A stretch of 64,000 nt of DNA, from the NCBI GenBank assembly GCA_965113315.1, contig OZ220368.1. The stretch is one strand, 5' to 3'. The notes below the pieces were generated by a model. That model was given only the letters and a program-made list of their open reading frames with translations, did not search any database and was not told the DNA's origin. Of the stretch, positions 21,072-64,000 are shown one piece after another; the first letter of the stretch is position 1; the number at the start of each line of letters is the position of its first letter. Source of the stretch: Podarcis vaucheri (lineage: Eukaryota). The position numbers were made by a program, and so were the translations under genes.

Positions 21072-21391
21072 CTGTGGTGGAAGTTCTCACTCTTGTGGTT
21101 TTTCTGGAAATACTCCCCTATAACACCTTGCATCAAAGGTTCTTGGGGTCGATGTGCTTTGGAGTATGGCGAAGTCCCCATGTGGCTAAAAACATCACAG
21201 GGTCCAACAGGAATGGTCCCTTTTTTCTTCCTCGGAAGGGTGCCATGAATGGAAACATCTTGACAGGTATGGGAGCGATGGTCTGCCAGAGATGGTTTGC
21301 TGCTCAAAAGGTCCATAGAAGATGCCAGCGAGAACTCATGGCTCATCTGCATATTTCTTGGGAGACTTGCAAATTTCCCAGCTGCTATCAT
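21072..21391 (-). CDS. BCAR3: BCAR3 coding exon 2 (exon 21399-21072, 328 nt; ATG at 21391)
   Basis: Translates to MIAAGKFASLPRNMQMSHEFSLASSMDLLSSKPSLADHRSHTCQDVSIHGTLPRKKKG...FSHMGTSP. This matches the recalled human BCAR3 N-terminus MAAGKFASLPRNMPVNHQFPLASSMDLLSS...QDVSIHGTLPRKKKG. Acceptor ttttgttttctag|AATT at 21399; donor AG|gtaaat at 21072 (phase 2). Confidence 0.97.
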
Positions 21392-24300
21392 TCTTAATTC
21401 TAGAAAACAAAAGTTGTGCATGGTGGAAGTTAGAGAAACACCAAAGCTAACTTCTTGGATCAGCGTAGGCTAAATCAGGGATCAATTGTTTCTATTCAAG
21501 TTGCTCATGTATATTAGATTCATTAAGGAAAAAAGAAAGAGTATATCCCTAAAATTAAGGGTTGGCAACTGAGAGCTCTGAAAGCAAGAAAGGCTGCCAC
21601 AAATATACCCAGTTTTAGATTCTAGTGTCCTGGCTTTCACCACAGTAGCTGCTGTGACTTCCAAGCCAACATTGCACTGGCAAGACTTTGAAAAAATTTA
21701 GATGGAAGAGTGTAGTTGGAATAGGAATAACATGGGCAGCTGTTGATAACCGCTCAGTCATCCCTGATAGCTACTTATAAATGTAACTGAAAAGTCTGTA
21801 AAACAAGAGGGAAATCTGCAATAGTAGTGTCAATGGCTACTATTGCTCTGATATCCAACGTGACAGCAGCTCAGCTCACCAAGCTACCATTGTATACTGG
21901 TCTCATCCACTGGCGTAATATCTTACACAATGCTTTGCCAGTACAGTGGTTTATAGGATTGGATCAATATGCATGACAAGACCCAGGGCTGGAGACTCAA
22001 AACATACACGTGAGTGTTCGGAAGGATTTATGGAGGTTAGGCTGTTATTACCGAAAACATTTATCTTTCTAATTGTTTTTTAACCCCCAAGTTTTTAAGC
22101 AGGTCAAACATCAGCCAAGAATCATTAACTACAGCTAAGCTGTCAGAAGAGACTGATATTGTACAGACTATCCTCAATTTAAGAGATTACAAATCTAAGC
22201 TCAGCAAGGGGTGCCATTTGAAAAAAATTTCTTTAGTGCTGCAAGAAAGCGGCTTGAGAAGCAAAGGTATGCTCATGTATCTAAATGCCTGCCAACAAAA
22301 AATGCACGCACATGCTTGGATTGTGAGTTCCTGTGAGCAAAACTCTGCTCATGGGATGTTCCCTCCAACGTAAGTGGGGGAGGCAATTTTCAGATTCTCT
22401 ATCCCCTTGAAAATCTGTAGGGGCCCTTCCAGAACAATGAAGTGGGAATGCAAGGAAAGGAGGAATGGCAAAAAGTGTGTCCCTGTCTTCTACCTATAGG
22501 AGTCTATGCTGGATCAAAATACCTTTGACAAATGGAATGAGACTTTCTCAAAAACGTGCAGCCAAGGAATTGCAGTCTTACAACAGATATAAATAGGGTG
22601 CACAAGCAGGCAAGGACATAACAGAGGTGTCAGTTGCAAGCATCCAAATGCCAACACAAATCAAAACATCCGAGTGAAATTAATGGAAGGCAGGGATAGT
22701 TGTGGACCACACCAAAAGAAATAATATCCATATCTGAGTTCTGGGCTGGGGGAAAAACCTGTAGCATTTATCCCATGGTAAAGTTAAGTGTTCTCAGTGT
22801 AAATGGTACAAATAGGTCACAAAATTACCTTCTCGTATACTTTTCTCATATGTTTCTCATACATGTCTCCTCATCTCTACTATTTGTAGCTGTTGCACTC
22901 TATTTGCATTTACCTAGGAGTAAACCCCATTGAACTAAATGGAACATACTGCTGGGTACACATGTACAGAATTACACTAAGAGGGTTATTTATATTCTGT
23001 GTTATTCCCCTTAAGGTACACACTCCTGCAACACTTTATCCTAAAAACACTATGGGTGGAATTCAATGTCACACTATGTTGAACATCCCACCTGTGCAAG
23101 CATATTAGCTTGCCAGTTGAAATTATCCCCCTTTCCCTGGTTTTCTGGGGGTTTTCATGAGTCCTCCTCCCAACAAGCCAATTTCAGGAGTGTGTGGAGT
23201 GGAGCCCCTTTGAGCAAGCCCAAACCCTTCAACCAACAAGGTTTCTTAAGTGAATCCTGCCCTGTGGTTTTATGTAACCCTTACAGGAGGCTCAAGAAGG
23301 AATCTTCCTCCCCCGGAGGGAATTCCCCATGCAAACCAATATCCCAGCATGAAAACATCCAAGACATGCTTCCTAATACAGGCAACCAGCATAAAATGTT
23401 CAAAGATATGGCTTTTTGCTGAGCCTAAGCAGTTGTAGAAGTTGTTCACTACACAGCTGGGAGATCTCAAAATGCCTTAAAGGATATAGCATTAAATTCA
23501 GAGATGAGTACTGCTGAAAAAGCAGATTTGCTGGGAAATATTCTTTTCTTCTTTCTCTGCCAGTGTCAGCTCAGTCAACCAGCTTCAAAGGTTGGATCAA
23601 GATGCTGGAGGGGTTTATTACAAAAAGATATGGAAACAAGTTTTGCATGCCTTTGCTGAAGTGCGATCAACTACAAAGCTTCAAACTCTGAGAACTAAGG
23701 TCACTTGGTACAATTTTTATCTAGGAGTTCCTTGATGTCCCCAGTTACAGCTACCAACTTTTGAACCAGCCTCCAAAATAACACCATTTATCTCCATGCT
23801 TTACAACTGTTCACACCGATTTCTTCAATGTTAAGCTGCTATTTAAAAGGCACAAGTGATATCACAGGGTATTTTTCCTGATGAGTTGGCAACCTGGTGA
23901 TGAATCAAGGTGTGGACTGGGAAACCCACCAATGTTGGTTGAGTAGACATGCTTATACATTCTTTCCACGTTATTATTTTCATCAAGAAAATGACTACAA
24001 AAATAACCCTAGGAAAGTGGTTTTTTTTCTGTTTTCCTTAGAATGTTAGAGTAAACAGAATAAATGCAATGTAAGGAGCCTGTTGGATAATGATTAATGT
24101 GTGTCATTGTTAATCAGTTTCGGGTCCATTCAGGAAACCAGCAGGTATGAAGTACTACAGACGCACGTCAATCATCAAAACTCTGGTTGTTGGGCACACC
24201 CACAGGGATAGACTGGAGTGACATCACTGCTTAGGTACTACAAACCACAAGAAAAGTTATGAAGCAGACTGTTAAATCTTCTTGAATGCCAGTACTGTGG

Positions 24301-32373: not shown

Positions 32374-32841
32374 ACTTCTCACTCTTTACTAACTTTCCAA
32401 AACACATTAGTTAGGAAGCCAGCCCCATCCTAAAGTCCTGCCTTCACTTAAGCCTTTGCCCATATAACACCGCCAAGGCTTCCTGAGCCGTTCAACAGTA
32501 AGGTAATTTTGGTGCAAATCAGTAAAACGAGTGAAAGGGGTTAGGTTAGGGGGAGAAAAGCAACATAAATTTAGTTAATTCCCAACTATAAGAATAAAAT
32601 TCTATTTGATAGGACTCCTAACTAAAGAGGTAAAAAATTTTTAAAAGGCCAGCACATTTTAGAAACTTACTTTAAGAGGAATGTTTTGTACATCAATGCC
32701 AGTTGTGTCTGCTGAGAGAAAATCAGCTGGGATGCATAATGGGCAAATTCCATCACATTCTTACTACCATAGTAACCTGTTTTTTAAACAGACACACTTG
32801 CCTTTTACAACTCAAAATACGCAATTGCTGGCAACTCTTTA
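32374..32841 (+). repeat. Left arm of ~468-bp inverted repeat
   Basis: Reverse complement of 35983-36449, with about 15 differences by manual alignment. Confidence 0.95.
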
Positions 32842-34849: not shown

Positions 34850-35340
34850 GGCGCCACTCTTACCTCAGGGGATGCTGCTTCGCAGCGCTGGAAGGGGAAA
34901 ACTCGGCAGCCGCGCACTATTCGCCCCAATTTGGGCAGCCGGAGAGACTTAGCACGCCGCCCCGCTCGTCGGGCGCGGGTCCACCGCAGGTTCTCTTCGG
35001 GCTCCGTCGTTCACCTTCAAGCGGCTTGGCCGGGGCAGGAGCGCTGCATGGTTCCCCGACCGCTGAGCCGGCGGTAGTGCTGCTGCGAGGCGAGTTTCGC
35101 GGCTCAGGCAAGCAAGCAAGCAAGCAAGCAAGCCGCCAACCAACCCCGGGCGGCGCGCGCTGCAAACTCAGGCAGCTGCAGGCACGGCGGCCAAGCCCCA
35201 CACGAGGCAGCGCCGGCGCTCCGGGAGTGATTGAGCGCCGCTCCGCAGCCACACCCCTGCGCCGCCGGAGCCCCCTCCAGAGGAGCTATTTACATACGGT
35301 GACCTCCCGTTGCCCTTTGCCGCGTCGAGAACTTTTCCTT
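34850..35340. promoter_or_regulatory. CpG island / proximal BCAR3 promoter
   Basis: High GC and CpG density. GC-box-like CCGCCCC near 34956. TATTTAC (FOX-like; TATGTAAATA on the minus strand) at ~35287-35296. Confidence 0.85.
34864..35260 (-). other. BCAR3: BCAR3 non-coding first exon (5' UTR); TSS approximate
   Basis: Lies in the only strong non-TE CpG island. Consensus donor CTGAG|gtaag at 34864. An in-frame TGA sits immediately before the junction, so translation starts at the exon-2 ATG. Confidence 0.8.
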
Positions 35341-35982: not shown

Positions 35983-36449
35983 TAAAGAGTTGCCAGCAAT
36001 TGCGTATTTTGAGTTGTAAAAGGCAAGTGTGTCTGTTTAAAAAACAGGTTACTATGGTAGTAAGAATGTGATGGAATTTGCCCATTATACATCCCAGCTG
36101 ATTTTCTCTCAGCAGACACAACTGGCATGAAGTACAAAACATTCCTCTTAAAGTAAGTTTCTAAAATGTGCTGGCCTTTTAAAAAAAAAATTACCTCTTT
36201 AGTTAGGAGTCCTATCAAATAGAAGTTTATTCTTATAGTTGGGAATTAACTAAATTTATGTTGCTTTTCTCCCCCTAACCTAATCCCTTTCACTCGTTAT
36301 ACTGATTTGCACCCAAATTACCTTACTGTTGAACGGCCCAGGAAGCCTTGGCGGTGTTATATGGGCAAGGCTTAAGTGAAGGCAGGACTTTAGGATGGGG
36401 CTAGCTTCCTAACTAATTTGTTTTGGAAAGTTAGTAAAGAGTGAGAAGT
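35983..36449 (-). repeat. Right arm of ~468-bp inverted repeat
   Basis: Reverse complement of 32374-32841. Confidence 0.95.
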
Positions 36450-50144: not shown

Positions 50145-50305
50145 TAAAATTGTCCAGTAGCACCTTAGAGATCAACTAAGTTTGTTCGGGATATAAGCTT
50201 GCTTGTGCATGCACATTTCTTCATATACTTAGTTGGTCTCTAAGGTGCTACTGGACAATTTTTAAATTTCAACTGTGTCAGACCAACACGACTACCTACC
50301 TGAAC
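50145..50305. mobile_element. Penelope-like fragment with inverted terminal arrangement
   Basis: AATTGTCCAGTAGCACCTTAGAGA..AACTAAGT followed by its reverse complement; homologous to 9108-9238. Confidence 0.65.
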
Positions 50306-50538
50306 CTCAGAAGGTGGACGAACTACCAAGAAGGCCCCAATCTGCCAGTCTTAACTTTCCAGAGTGTCTGTAAGGAAGGAGATGATCTTTCAGACATTTG
50401 GGGCTTGAGTCATTTAGTGTTCAAATGTGAGTACCTTGAACTGACCACGGAAATGAATTTGCAGCCAGTAACGAAATGTTTGTTTTAAATTCACCAATAA
50501 GACTGACAAATTAATTTTAGCTAGAACCTACTTCTTAC

Positions 50539-50653
50539 CATCTTTTCTTTCTGTTTCCTTAAGGAGCAAGATGTTAGAAAGGATGTGTATCTGGTGGATT
50601 TGATCCTTAGCTCCCATTTTCTTCAGTTCAGCTTCTGTCAGGTGGAGCAAATC
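50539..50653 (-). CDS. BCAR3: Putative upstream BCAR3 coding exon encoding the C-terminal half of a SAM domain (DLLHLTEAELKKMGAKDQIHQIHILSNILLLKETERKD)
   Basis: Acceptor cttcttttttgttgggccggttccag|GAT, donor GATG|gtaag. 115 nt, open, phase 0 to phase 1. SAM-like pattern (DLL-L-E--LK-MG-K...H...IL--I). The phase-1 end splices in frame to exon 2 (G|AA TTA AGA ATG = E-L-R-M). Confidence 0.8.
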
Positions 50654-51769
50654 CTGGAACCGGCCCAACAAAAAAGAAGATGGTTGAGAAAATATTAACT
50701 TTGTTCATTTTTTAAGAAATAATATTCTTTTTAAAAAATGATCCAACATTTTATTGCAATAAATTAAAAGCATCCAGAACATAATCCCAGAACATAACAA
50801 ACACTGCTCATTTTTCCATAGGTACTGCTAAGAATTAACACCTAACAAATGAATGTATTGCCAAAATACAATGCTATCAAAAGGTTGTTCTTCAATAGCT
50901 AATTCTTGTTACTTATTTGTACCACCCTCCTAACCATTTGAAAGCACCGTGAGAAACTCTTTTAGTTCATTATCACTTTTCACTTTTCTCTCTCTCTCTC
51001 TGCCTTGTCTCTGAGGATCATTAAAAGACACATTCTTTGGAATTTACTTTGAGGAAGGAGTTCTTAACATCCAGGTCTATTGGGGGAATTTTTGTTTGTT
51101 TGTTTACAAGAACTGGCATCTAAGCTGTAGGGCCATAAAACACAGACCACACCATTTAATTACTGTCAGTGTATGGCAAAAAACCACCTGCAAGCAATTT
51201 CTATTTTAAATTGTGCCATGATCTGAAAAACCTAATTGTTCCCACCCAGCCACCCAGAAGTTGGTGGACTGGACAAAAGAGCTGCCAATTCATTTAGGAA
51301 ACACCCTCCACTTAATTTTCTTAACCTCCATGACCTGTAAAAAGCTGGAACATGATGGTAGACTTGCACATTTGAAAATGTCTAATCATTTAGTATTATA
51401 TTTTACTATAAAACCTTTGTGTGGCACAGGGTTGGGAGAAATCTCAGTAAGGAAACAGCTTCTAAAACTGTAAGATAGTTCATAGATAGAAGAATGACCT
51501 CAAGCACTGAACAAATCCATTGTATCCAGGATGCCACACTAGTCAACCAAGGAGGAACAGTTAATTCCTACCTTCCTACCCCCTCAGGCAAAGGTTCTGG
51601 TCTATTTAACTATGAAAGCACTTCTGTTGTGCATACTGTATTATCTTCCAGTTTGCTGTCTGTGTGAACTCAATCTTTCTCTTCTTCAGTTGTATAGTGC
51701 AGCCTTTTGTGTGCATCTCAAAGAAAGAAACATGCTCCAACCCAATGCTGCACAATGCTGACTGCCTAC

Positions 51770-52279
51770 CTATTGAAGAATGGAACTCTCTGGTGCGGAG
51801 GGATCACTTGGGAAGACAGGCGAGGAAGAAGCAAAGATCACCAGTGTTAAAGCAATGACTCTTCAACATCAACTTTGTTGGACTGGTCATGTTGTGCGGA
51901 TGCCTGATTACCATCTTCCAAAGCAATTACTCTATTCCGAACTTAAAAATGGAACGTGTAATGCTGGTGGTCAACAAAAGGGGTTTAAAGACTGTCTCAA
52001 GGCAAATCTTTAAAAATGTAGTATAAACACCAACAACTGAGAAACACTGGCCTGCAAGCACTCCAACTGGAGAAGAGTCTTTACCAAAGGTGTCATGGGC
52101 TTTGAAGACACTCAAACTCAGAACGCAAGGGAGAAACGTGCCAAGAGGAAGTCACACAGAAGGACATGTGGTTCCAGAATTGGCGTCCACAGTCACTTAT
52201 GGACTCGCTGTTAAAACCATGTTTATGGAAGACAATCTTACTCGCCTACGAGTAATCGCCGAAGAAGAAGAAGAAGAAG

Positions 52280-52308
<29 letters not shown>
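51770..52308 (+). mobile_element. RTE-clade LINE 3' fragment with (GAA)n tail
   Basis: Encodes QLCWTGHVVRMPDYHLPKQLLYSELKNG..GGQQKGFKDCLK; (GAA)16 tail at 52261-52308. Confidence 0.85.
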
Positions 52309-52310
<2 letters not shown>

Positions 52311-55300
52311 GTGTGTGTGTCCCACCCTTCAGAAGCTAGTACTGACTCAAGGCTATCTCTGAAATCATTTTGTCTTTAACCATCAGTCTAGATTATCAGA
52401 CTACATTTCCCCAAGAAGTTGTTGGCAATCTGAACAGAGACACAAGGGAAGCAGCAGTCTGAGGGGAATGGAAGTAGGTGTAAACAGGGGAAGAATATGT
52501 GATTATTTTCATTGCAATCACATATTCTTCGTCTGTTTACACCTACTTCCATTCCCCTCAGACTGCTGCTTCCCTTGTGTCTATTCTTAGATTGTAAACT
52601 CCTTGGGGTTAGGATCTGTCTTCTTCCTCTCATTATTTTCTAAGGTTCATGTACATACATGATGCTATATAAATAAGCAAATAAAAATAGCCCTAGTTTA
52701 TGTACAGCACCAGATGGGCACTGTCCATTGTCTCTCTGTTTGGGAAGGTTCTACAGCTGGGGTGGGGAACCTGTGTCCCTACAGATGTAGTCTAATCTTT
52801 CCTGACCACTGACTATGCTAGCTGAGTCCAGCAACATCTGGAGAACCAGAAGCTCCTTGTCCCTGTTCTACAGGACAGGGCAGATAGTGCTATTAATAAA
52901 TCAACTCCATTTAACAGATTAAAGCAGATAAAATCTCTCTTGCTCAAATCAATCCTTCTTTCCTGTGATTTTAAAGATGGCAAATTGCGTCTGAATCAGC
53001 TGCAGGGCCACTAGAACTCAGGGAAAGTGGCATGAGAGCACACCCTCCCTGCAAACAGCAAAAACATCAAGCCCTAAAACACAAAAATAGTGTCATGGCT
53101 AGGACAACCACATTGGCAGACATCACACTACAGTGGCTGGGTTTACTCACTAATAAAGTTTAGAGATTTTCTTATGGGAAACAAATGGGAGGGTTACAGG
53201 ATTTGAATTACATTATATCTGGTGTTGGGGGGAAATAATGGTATGTACTGATCCTGATTTAAATACTCTGGAATTGACCACCATTTACATGTGAATAATG
53301 TTTGATTTTCCTTACACAACCTGGTTGCTTGAGCTGCTGGGCTTTAAGAAACATGCTTCCATTTACAGAAAATGTATTCTGCTCTGCTGCATGCCTCGAG
53401 TTTTGCCTCTTTTGTCCATTACCCAAGCAAAAATCTTTCTGCCTGTTATGCAAAAAGAGAAAACTAAGGAAATTATGGCTTCTTGGCAACAAAACCACTT
53501 GTTCTAGCCTGCTTACATGCTAAATATGTTACACACACATTTGCCCACAGGCTGATGTCATATGGTCAGCAATGTGTCAAAAACATCGTTACAGCCCACA
53601 CTGCTGAGATCACAATTTTTAAACAGACTTGAGGGCTGGAGGAAGCTCAAGGAAGGCATGACATACAGCAGTTTCAAGATTACTCCAAGTACATGGTTCC
53701 TTTATTACTGGAAATGTTGAACAAGCATTCAAGCAAGAAAAATGACAGCTCTGTTAGCAATAGTTTGGAAGCCACCAAGGATTACAACTAGACCTACAAT
53801 AGACCACTGGTCTGACTTAAAATAAGGCAACTTCTGATATCCCTATAACATAAAGAAAATTTAGCTGGGAAGTCCTAGGAAGCAAGCACAATTCATTCGC
53901 TATAATTCTTCCTGTTTTCTCATCTCCCCTTCCATTTGCATTTAACAATTTCTAGTAGTTCACGTTCATCTTTCTCACTGGGAGGAGTTAAGGAAGTTCT
54001 AACCAACACTTACTAACCAAATCTATATATCTGTTCAGCTCGCCTGCCCCACCAGGGGTGTATGATGATGTCAAAATCACAGCCTTTAAACATCACTTCC
54101 CTTAAGCCTGTTAATTAAAACAAATTTTGAAAATAAATTACTATGTAGTGAAACCCCACACTAAGCCCTGCAATTCTCTTACCCTTTTGCTTCATCCAAG
54201 TTCAGAAAAGTTAAACCTTCCAGGCATGTTGCAAAGTCTACCTTTACCTCAATCATTAAAGCATTTGAGCCTTGATCCAGCAAAACATTTATAGACATGC
54301 TTGAAGTTCATCAAGTGCGTATATGGGGTACTGCTGACTCAATTGTTTGCAAAGAGGCAAGTAAAATGAAATGAAATGAAAGAGGTAGTAGATGCATGAA
54401 TCTAAGGGGAGCACCGACAGATAGGTATCACCAGAGCTTGCAGAGCTCATTTCAAAAAGGAACAAGCTCTAGTTCAAGTTCAAGGTGTCAAAAAATGAAC
54501 TAATTCCAGTTCAGATCCGTCCCTTTACAAAACAAACTACCGTAGTTCGGTCCATGTTCAATTTGCAGTTCAAGTCCATCCAAATGATCCTCAGCACCCC
54601 CCAATCACATTTTGCCCATGCCCAGAACAAACCAAAGCAATATTCTGAAGAGTGAGCAATTAACCCATCAAGCTCTACACAGAGTTATTGTGCCTCTCCA
54701 TGTGCAACACGCTCTCCAAGAACAACAAGTCCCAGGCTTCCTTAGTTTCTGCTGGTCTTTTCTGTGCATGGGCAGGTAGAGCCACATCAGAACACAGCGG
54801 TAGGCAGCACCATCAGTAATTTAGGGGCATTGAGGACCAGCACCATCAGTAATTTAGGGGCACCGAGATAACATTTACAGCTCCCCGGAATATGTGTGAG
54901 TTGGGGCCTGTAGTTTCCTGAGTTTATAGGAGAATCGACCCTTGGTCCAGGGGCAAGGGAAGAGCAGCTAAATGTCATTTGACCTTATTTGCCAAAGATG
55001 TAAGAAGCTTTAACAAAAAATAAGGACCCAAAGAAGCTCAAGGGCAGACAAAGGATTTTGGGACAGGGTCTTGTATTTACAAAGTTGCTCCAGGCCCAGA
55101 TGAATTATGTTTGGGCACTGTATGCAGATCCAGTATATCCCACAGTGCGCTCTCTCTCGCTCTCGCTCTCGCTCTCTCTCCCTCTCTCTCTTGACCTCAT
55201 GCCTTGATGCTTTGTGAGCTTCCAGAAGCATTTTGCTGTTTGGAATTGCGAAGCCAGGCAAGGTGGACTTTGGTTTCTTCCAGCAAGGCAGTTGCAATGC

Positions 55301-60840: not shown

Positions 60841-61374
60841 CCGTATTTTTCGCCCTATAGGACGCACCGGCCCATAGGACGCACCTAGTTTTTTGGGGGG
60901 GAAATCAAGGGGAAAATTTTTCTTTCCCCCCCCCCAGGTTTGCGCAACCATCCCAAGCTAGAAGAGGGAGATGGAGCGCTCCGTCTCCCTCTTCTGCCTT
61001 CAGGGACAGCTTGCCTCGCTATCCTGCGAGCTTGTGGGGCTGGCGGGGGGAGAAGCAGGCTTGCTTCTCCCCCCGCCAGCCTCCAGATCAGGTCGGGGAA
61101 TAGCGGGGTGGCGGCGCTGCGCCTCCCCACTGTCCCCAGCTTTTGGGTGCAGGCTGCTGCCCGCAAGCCTAGTGAGCCCGCGGGACATCCCGCCGGGCTT
61201 GCAAGACTTGCGGATAGCTTCCTGAAGCCTGGAGAGCGAGAGGGGTCGGTGCGCACCGACCCCTCTCGCTCTCCAGGCTTCAGCGAAAGCCTGCATTCGC
61301 CCCATAGGACGCAACCAGATTTCCCCTTCATTTTTGGAGGGGAAAAAGTGCGTCCTATAGGGCGAAAAATACGG
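60841..61374. mobile_element. Tc1/mariner (pogo/Tc2-like) non-autonomous element
   Basis: Perfect ~27-bp TIRs CCGTATTTTTCGCCCTATAGGACGCAC; TA TSD; CpG-rich, so probably young. Confidence 0.9.
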
Positions 61375-64000
61375 TAGGTAATATCTGGTGCATTGAAAGG
61401 AAGATGCAGGCCAGTGGAAAAATACAGGCTAAACTCCCTTTTCAGTCCAAGGTCTCGCTTGGGGATAGTAGCTGTTAAGCATAACAAACAGTGTTGATAT
61501 CCCATCACAGGAAAATCCTTGAGTATGTGGCAATGGAGGTTGCCAAGGTTATGCAGAGTGAAGACGTACGGTTACAGGAAAATGGTCACCTTTTAAATCT
61601 AGACTTGGAATAGCAAAGGGGCAGGCCAAGCAGGCAGAAAGGCAAGGTGTTCTGGGAACAAGAAGAAGGAAGCAGGGAGAATTTCATGCGACAGCTGAAG
61701 GTCCGAACCATCTTTGCAGGCTGGCTGAAGGCAGGCTGGGACAGAGACACGGAGATGCCTTGGAATTAGATGCTGCCCTGCTGTAAGGAACAAACCCCTC
61801 TTGGGATGTGGATGCTATCAACTCTGCACTCGCTCCATTGAAAGCTTCCAGTGTAAAATAAACCACATTACTTAAAGTCCCCCCTGCGTCTTAATTCCCA
61901 ACGGATACACGGCCTGGAACTCCCTGGAATTTTGCTAAAACTCAACAGAGATTGGGGGTGGAGCGCAACCTTCGTAGCAATAGCACACCTTAGTTTCAAC
62001 TGCAGGCAGTTTCGTTTTCTCCACAACAGGGCTTGCAATTGCTTAATTGCCTCCTTTAAAAAATGCCTTCCTGAAGCACCGAGCCTTGCCCCAGTGGAAT
62101 TGTAGTGTCATGAGGAAGGGAAAAAACACACCTCTGGGTCAGATCTCGGCAGGTACAAACCAGCAAAGTGCTGCTCAAAGCGAAAGAGACTTGCCTGTCT
62201 GCATTAGCTGAGGCACTGAAAATTTGCATCCATCTGAGGCAGCTTCCCCTTTTGTTTGCTCTTTCCACTTATACTTCATAACCATTCAGCTTGCAGAAGC
62301 TATTTCCATCTGAATGAATCTCTCCGCTTTATCTGAATGGACTACTCTGTTTAACCAGTTGCTTCTCTGAGGGCTCAAACTGTCACAGACATTACGCATA
62401 CTCTTCAGTCTGAAATGAGACAAGAGGGTTCCCCGCTCCTCCTCAACAATAGCCCAGATCAGCCTGAACGAGTACTTTAGCTTCTGCTTACAAGTAGGCA
62501 GAGGCCATATCAAATAACTCACCAAACAGCCCATCAATAACCCCATTCATACTTTATAATCCCCAAACTTACTTTGTTCAAATCATTGTGCGGAGCTGCC
62601 ATAACCAGGGGCCATTAGCCACGATCCTGACAAATTGTTTGCCACACAAAAACTCTGGCCACTTGAAAAGATACTATTCATATGGTCTGTGGTGAGCAGA
62701 CTCTGCTCTCAGACTTGAATATGCAGCTCATGCCCACAGTTTCGCTGGATCATATACTACAGAGAAGCTTGAGGGTGAAACACAACTCAGGACCATGTTT
62801 TGGTAATGATACCCTCTCACAAGCAACTGCCTCAGCATTTCAAACACCCTTTGGATCAGCAAGTCCGCTTCAGAATTAAAATTAAAGCTGCAATTATTAT
62901 AAAGAGGTGTTTCTTACGAAGGTATTGTGTTAGAAGTCACCCGTTCGCCCCTCCACCGGGCGAACTCCCCCCTCAGTCATGTACGAACATGACTCTTTGC
63001 TGCTACACATTTTGGTTCCCTGGTGATATTCTCAAAGCTCTATCATTAAAACAACACAGTTAAGTCATCTCATCTCACCCCCAGCTGGAACTTTGGTGTC
63101 TCCTGTTGGGCAGGAAATCTGCTAGAAGACTCACCATTGTTCTTCATGCTCAGATGAGTATTTGTAGCATGCTGGAAATGGCCTGCTAGCAGTTTGTGTC
63201 AGGGCCTGTCAGGCAGAGTGAGGCAACTGCTTCAAGTGGCAGATATTGGTGAAAGCCCCCCCACCCCAAAACCCGAGCCATTTTCCTGTCTTGGAAATCA
63301 GTTGTGCTGCCGAATTGGAACTGGGATTGTTAACTTTAAAACAACAGCCTTGCTGTGTGTGCCAAGGTGAACAGGCCTGGGATTTTCCTTTGAAAAGGGG
63401 GTGTAAGGACAAATAATCAAGCAAAATAGAGGTTCAAAAGCTCTGTTTCCTAACCAGTTTTGCACAGCTAGGGCTTCCTCGCCCTAATGGAAAACTACCC
63501 TTGAGAAAGGGAAATTGGAATTTGTAGAGAAGGAGTTATCCTACCTAAGCAGACTACTCACACACTTACTAGGGATGAGGTAATACTCACAGTCAGGAGC
63601 CTGGCTGGGGAGCCTTGGGGCAAGCAAAAATAGGAGAAAGGTTAGGCGTTGAGAGAAGAAGATGCTGCAGATATGTTGCCTCTTTGGGTTCACTGTGTAA
63701 CTTTCTCTGAACTGGAACAGAGAGTTATGTGACAGAAAACGATGTACATGTTAGTGGCTTGAAATACGGTGAGGTCATTTCCCTCAACTGCATTTCAAGT
63801 TGCTTTCTTATGTTCCTATGCAAACCAGGGTGCAGGGCTGTCTTCGCCTGATACACATTATTTCATCCCTGCGCTGAATACTGCAGCTTCTGTTTTCTAA
63901 TCAGATGGACTGAAGCTGGTTTGAGGGAAAGTGCATCTAGCAGGAGTGTTACTCAAGAAGCTACAGGATACAGATGAATTCTGGCTAACATCATGTGTAC

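Follow-up and report, generated by a model that had tools for sequence, protein, structure and literature searches.

A conserved SAM-domain exon in the distal 5' region of BCAR3 in a lizard

Features of the locus

As an adaptor of p130Cas, BCAR3 has been studied extensively in cell migration and in resistance to anti-oestrogens; its recognised domains are an SH2 domain and a Cdc25-like domain, the latter binding p130Cas. The window, by which we mean the whole 64,000-nucleotide stretch of Podarcis vaucheri DNA that was analysed, carries the following features of the 5' region of this gene, all of them on the minus strand.

21072..21399, minus strand: BCAR3 exon 2, 328 nt, with the canonical ATG at 21391-21389, preceded by 8 nt that hold no stop and suit a phase-1 junction
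34864..34900, minus strand: 3' end of the proximal non-coding exon 1, ending CCCCTGAG-gtaaga
50300..50367, minus strand: new downstream exon of about 68 nt, 171 nt past exon B, with the acceptor tccttccttacAG-ACAC
50539..50653, minus strand: SAM exon B, 115 nt, starting in phase 0 and ending in phase 1, coding for the C-terminal half of a SAM domain

Exon B starts at 50653 behind the acceptor ...ggttccAG and is followed, after 50539, by the donor GTaaga (minus strand), and translates into 38 codons without a stop, with one base left over, the peptide being the one that a first-pass annotation of this DNA had quoted. What that annotation said of the sequence itself, namely the splice borders, the size of 115 nt, the phase 1 end and the translation, was correct on re-reading throughout. 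It had also read the peptide as the second half of a SAM domain, and the Pfam profiles bear this out: the SAM_2 profile (PF07647) matches with an E-value of 9.3e-5 and 23.0 bits, over the curated cut-off of 20.5, and profile positions 36-66 of 66 are covered, which is the C-terminal half, while SAM_1 (PF00536) gives an E-value of 0.007 and 17.1 bits, under its cut-off of 23. Of a complete SAM domain of ~65 residues, only the C-terminal half lies in the window.

The exon that follows at 50367 reads D-T-L-E-S-stop in the SAM frame, with the TAA at 50353-50351, so that the frame closes five codons after exon B. A strong donor (TTCAG-GTAGGT) stands after 50300, and its position suggests that the 3' end lies there and that this is a 68-nt internal exon.

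Homologues of exon B

Exons were searched singly. The exon B peptide was searched by exhaustive phmmer against 1.84 billion representative proteins. Six matches were returned, the best three with E-values of 2e-8 to 2e-7 and 65-73% identity, and these three together with two further matches represent the same exon in other vertebrates. The SAM module is present in turtles (Eretmochelys CAM5135290.1; Lepidochelys CAM4714966.1 and CAM4602462.1), in the alligator (KYO19593.1 and KYO19594.1, annotated as 'SAM domain-containing protein'), in sharks (Scyliorhinus GCB65317.1 and XP_038649354.1; Chiloscyllium) and in ray-finned fishes (the sturgeon Acipenser; eels, including Synaphobranchus KAJ8376453.1; tarpon, bonefish, Dallia and Tetraodon), and SAM-bearing models that are named BCAR3 occur in the loach Triplophysa (KAA0714218.1) and in the electric eel Electrophorus (XP_035377850.1 and XP_035377851.1, isoforms X1/X2). 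The lizard peptide shares 71-73% identity with the turtle and alligator proteins and 50-58% with the SAM proteins of sharks and fishes, with no indel, and 11 columns are invariant in all 14 aligned sequences, lizard included.

In these homologues the domain is made up of two parts, a 30-codon exon A (M-K-H...Y-D-G-V-E, start codon included) and a 38-codon part that matches exon B. As a profile, exon A reads M-K-H-L-A-I-S-K-W-L-T-Q-L-G-L-P-E-Y-C-x-L-F-D-x-E-Y-D-G-V-E. The orthologues P0002, P0019, P0007, P0015 and P0014 each contain a complete SAM, with SAM_1 E-values of 7e-15 to 7e-13. Atlas look-ups led only to generic SAMD5-like or SH2 clusters, below 0.9. The solved structures nearest to the turtle orthologue are the SAM domains of Caskin-1/2, ANKS1B (AIDA-1), SHIP2 and SAMD5 (E 2e-7 to 3e-3), a likeness at the level of the domain family and not of orthology. 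Several of the nearest solved entries are, by their titles, fusions or complexes with Eph-receptor SAM domains, and a link between a BCAR3 SAM and these receptors may serve as a lead for function, not as a result.

The turtle and alligator proteins are the nearest relatives of the lizard peptide. They hold a complete SAM (Pfam E about 1e-14) and include exon A, which is missing from the lizard window. The first-pass annotation had reported that the first half of the domain could not be found there, and this stands: tblastn with turtle, shark and fish proteins located nothing in the 64 kb, and a 13-species profile of exon A, run against the six-frame translation of the window, gave a best E-value of 0.68 in an irrelevant place. 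The window has no N gaps, and the 13.3 kb upstream of exon B that it covers are without exon A. The segment 63415-63471, matched weakly (E 4.2), was considered as the first SAM half and dismissed as chance.

Transcription and splicing of exon B

Among public sequencing runs, DNA-like matches and a few that may be RNA were found for this DNA, and four runs were compared with positions 50300-50900. In run X5 (organism B), record 8 is a 250-nt contig of depth 6 and zero mismatches, made up of 50350-50367, 50539-50653 and 117 further letters that match nothing in the window. The contig uses both splice sites of exon B to the base and lacks a 171-nt GT...AG intron (50368-50538, minus strand), joining 50539 to 50367 and ending at 50350. 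Exon B is transcribed and spliced.

Neither neighbour of exon B in this contig is the one that the first-pass annotation had predicted. A junction from 50539 to 21399, the start of BCAR3 exon 2, was seen in no read and no contig, and the sole spliced contig goes from 50539 to 50367 instead. Upstream, a spliced junction is seen at 50653, but its partner does not read as exon A: the 30 letters shown of this upstream exon give ...L-L-P-R-D-I-N-S in frame, with a match to the end of exon A (...F-D-x-x-Y-D-G-V-E), which is highly conserved across 13 species, at 1/10 residues. Three pattern searches allowing mismatches placed the upstream exon nowhere in the window. The contigs of X1 and X6, two runs from related lizards, stay colinear with the genomic sequence through intron and exon; they are DNA-like and thus uninformative on splicing. 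A raw RNA-seq run with the species label (X19) had 0 reads on the stretch, a count that is uninformative on absence.

A chance open frame, flanked by chance splice-like signals inside an intron, could account for the frame taken by itself, the p value for 38 open codons being about 0.16. It is refuted by the SAM_2 match, which exceeds the Pfam cut-off, by orthologues of the peptide in species from sharks to turtles (E 2e-8 in a search of 1.8 billion proteins), and by the contig in which both splice sites of exon B are used exactly, and we give it a negligible probability. Exon B is a genuine, conserved SAM exon in the distal region of BCAR3.

The contig and the reptile homologues also bear on what the exon may belong to. 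In sauropsids the SAM could be a stand-alone protein of about 75-150 aa, composed of exons A and B and a short species-specific tail, unfused to BCAR3 and transcribed from a start upstream of it; the lizard tail would then be encoded at 50367-50300 (...D-T-L-E-S-stop). The turtle and alligator models named above do consist of a SAM that runs on into unrelated, mutually different short tails with no BCAR3 sequence, and in the lizard contig exon B is followed by a stop-bearing exon, itself conserved in relatives. The species-to-species variation of these tails, on the other hand, resembles read-through or arbitrary terminal exons, the upstream exon of the lizard contig is not exon A, and the same SAM is joined to BCAR3 in the fish and shark models. 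On balance a stand-alone protein seems to us unlikely.

A possible junction with BCAR3 exon 2

Exon 2 begins at 21399, with the strong acceptor ttttgttttctAG before it and a donor past 21072. The first-pass annotation had held that exon B would splice in frame on to this exon, and the phases do fit: the G carried over from exon B and the 8 nt before the ATG, which are without a stop, read E-L-R when the junction codons are translated, and the frame continues stop-free into M-I-A-A-G-K-F-A-S-L-P-R-N. The proximal exon 1, as had also been claimed, places a TGA (34867-34865) in the frame of the exon 2 junction, directly upstream of it.

The SAM of the shark, sturgeon, eel, loach and electric-eel models runs straight on into E/D-L-K/R-M-M-A-E/A-G-K/R/N-F/Y-A/S-S-L-P-R, which is the start of the first BCAR3 coding exon. 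The in-frame junction that had been predicted for the lizard (E-L-R-M-I-A-A-G-K-F-A-S-L-P-R-N) is thus the same junction as that of the shark and ray-finned-fish gene models, and the agreement implies that the lizard inherited its matching phase and its stop-free 8 nt, which are not accidental. Like the shark and fish models, the lizard locus has exon B of the two-exon SAM, the phase-1 end for the junction and the E-L-K/R-M motif that opens the BCAR3 exon. They differ in that the junction lies inside an annotated protein in sharks and fishes, whereas in the lizard it is possible on paper only.

Among annotated proteins of tetrapods (the turtle and alligator models and the exon-2-like fragments), no join of SAM to BCAR3 was found. 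BCAR3 N-terminal homologues of exon 2 were recovered, snake RefSeq models among them, and the SAM was absent from 55/55 of the exon-2-like fragments. The first-pass annotation had gone further and envisaged a long isoform with SAM, SH2 and GEF domains in one polypeptide. No chain with a SAM, an SH2 and a Cdc25-like domain was seen in any species among proteins of 0.55-1.75x the query length, a result that may only reflect this range of lengths, and the SAM-BCAR3 models visible in fishes and sharks are 199-314 aa long, with non-BCAR3 tails at the end. A long SAM-BCAR3 isoform in the lizard is plausible but unproven, and the single transcript seen lends it no support.

Two observations concern the start of BCAR3 in other species. 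The residues E-L-R also stand before the BCAR3 start in the mammal-like genomic read-through ORFs P0036, P0037 and P0052 (E-L-R-I-M-A-A-G-K). Conservation of the 8 nt before the ATG could come from constraint on the acceptor and the start context instead of coding, and in the mammal-like ORFs the E-L-R may reflect either such a constrained context or a coding junction that is older and wider than annotated. A snake RefSeq model from Thamnophis (XP_013929995.1, P0082) has a different N-terminus of 35 residues in place of the first BCAR3 residues, a hint that squamates have more alternative 5' coding exons.

State of the lizard copy

The lizard exon B has zero stops and zero indels. Alone among the 14 sequences, it differs at D9 (which is E in the lizard) and R21 (Q); in addition, position 15 carries A instead of I/V, and position 38 carries D instead of K/R. 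Related lizards A and C show no listed difference from the window at codons 9, 15, 21 and 38; the changes are shared by these relatives and therefore not recent. A relative-rate count, made by hand with a shark as outgroup, gave 5 changes specific to the lizard and 1 specific to the turtle; the difference is not significant, and for this reason we make no claim of relaxed constraint.

When the contigs of X1 and X6 are compared with the window, exon B and the 68-nt exon together show 8/343 differences and the intron between them 21/331 (Fisher p 0.013). The 68-nt exon by itself differs at 2/68 positions in related lizards, as against 9-12 of about 160-171 in the preceding intron. Among the lizards, the upstream flank of exon B diverges about as little as exon B itself, so that the low divergence of the exon may not be specific to coding. 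Judged from the sequence, the lizard exon B has probably been under long-term coding constraint, with some lineage-specific change, and does not appear to be in decay.

At 50562-50900, deep genome-colinear contigs from small runs of related lizards (X1-X4 and X6) are centred on exon B and its upstream flank, with a flank divergence of 1-3% there and 6-9% downstream. This block looks like a capture target for conserved elements, and it may also hold a conserved non-coding element.

An alternative is that the SAM frame has fallen out of use in squamates. Exon A would then have been lost or bypassed, exon B would be a non-coding 5' leader of distal-promoter BCAR3 transcripts or part of a separate non-coding RNA, and BCAR3 would start at the exon-2 ATG. 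The sole spliced contig, with its non-SAM upstream exon and its stop-bearing downstream exon, fits such a history, as do the window without exon A and the departures of the lizard alone at the near-invariant SAM residues D9 and R21, with those at positions 15 and 38. Human BCAR3, moreover, has several non-coding alternative 5' exons, and its translation begins in exon 6 of 17 (PMC11083344). Against disuse stand the open frame itself, with its indel-free identity of 71-73% to turtle and alligator, a level that, from general knowledge of neutral decay, would be hard to keep over the lizard-turtle distance if there were no coding constraint, and also the preserved phase and E-L-R codons at exon 2 and the little divergence of exon B among related lizards. 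We consider the loss of the coding role somewhat unlikely.

Possible products of the locus

The interpretation that we favour is that an ancient SAM module of two exons lies at the distal 5' end of BCAR3 and has exon B as its second exon, that a SAM-BCAR3 N-terminus is still possible in the lizard, and that the 68-nt exon is an alternative, stop-bearing cassette; we put the chances of this being right at about even. In jawed vertebrates exons A and B together form the SAM module, and in the shark and fish models the splicing of exon B on to the first BCAR3 coding exon sets the SAM in front of the usual BCAR3 N-terminus. The lizard has kept what such a join would use, that is, the open frame, both splice sites, the compatible phase and the E-L-R codons before the exon-2 ATG. 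The outcome would then be set by alternative splicing. If the 68-nt exon is skipped, a SAM-BCAR3 N-terminus would be made; if it is included, which is the only form seen, the SAM frame would end five codons on, and the transcript might encode a SAM-only mini-ORF, or carry the SAM frame as an upstream ORF before the normal BCAR3 start.

A more far-reaching version would hold that an N-terminal SAM of the Caskin/ANKS1/SHIP2/SAMD5 type is ancestral to BCAR3 and is still made from a distal promoter in non-mammalian vertebrates, lizards included, with the cassette at 50300-50367 as the switch that sets whether the locus yields plain BCAR3, a BCAR3 adaptor with a SAM or a mini-protein consisting of the SAM only. 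We regard this version as unlikely. If it were true, the adhesion module of Cas and NSP proteins would gain a SAM-SAM docking input, e.g. from Eph-receptor SAM domains, which is not known to have been considered in mammalian work.

The canonical mammalian BCAR3 (AND-34/NSP2) is the same gene with the same first coding exon (M-x-A-A-G-K-F-A-S-L-P-R-N...), and in both the mammalian gene and the lizard locus the 5' region is long and includes alternative non-coding exons; no SAM, however, has been described for the mammalian protein. A 2024 review places the SH2 domain at residues 154-253 and a GEF-like region at the C-terminus (PMC11083344). In the full-text literature search, no paper was found that connects a SAM domain with BCAR3 or with the NSP family. 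The claim of novelty is nevertheless weakened, since SAM-bearing 'BCAR3' fish models are already in RefSeq/GenBank. The architecture to which the lizard exon B belongs is already in public fish annotation, and the new detail is its 68-nt stop-bearing neighbour.

The BCAR3 locus, then, carries an old and strongly conserved SAM module, which the shark and ray-finned-fish models attach to the BCAR3 N-terminus and which turtles, the alligator and the lizard also have. If a SAM-BCAR3 protein is made, the choice of promoter or cassette would add a surface for SAM-SAM interaction or oligomerisation to the Cas adaptor; if the squamate module is a leader exon only, a coding domain would have been demoted to UTR. 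In either case, the annotation of reptile BCAR3 should gain exon B and the adjoining 68-nt exon.

Other features of the window

A GC-rich block at 60.8-61.5 kb was considered as a distal promoter or first exon and rejected; it is repeat-like, its ORFs being mirrored between the two strands, and shows no similarity to SAM. Within it, 60885-61508 has a GC content of 0.59, and the long ORFs on its two strands share the same peptide stretch, a pattern that suggests an internally inverted repeat or a SINE-like element. A long triplet run of the GAA/TTC type at 52197-52325 gives poly-E and poly-S ORFs on the two strands. The segments 32703-32777 and 36047-36121, which came up as noise matches in tblastn, have an identical translated string on opposite strands.
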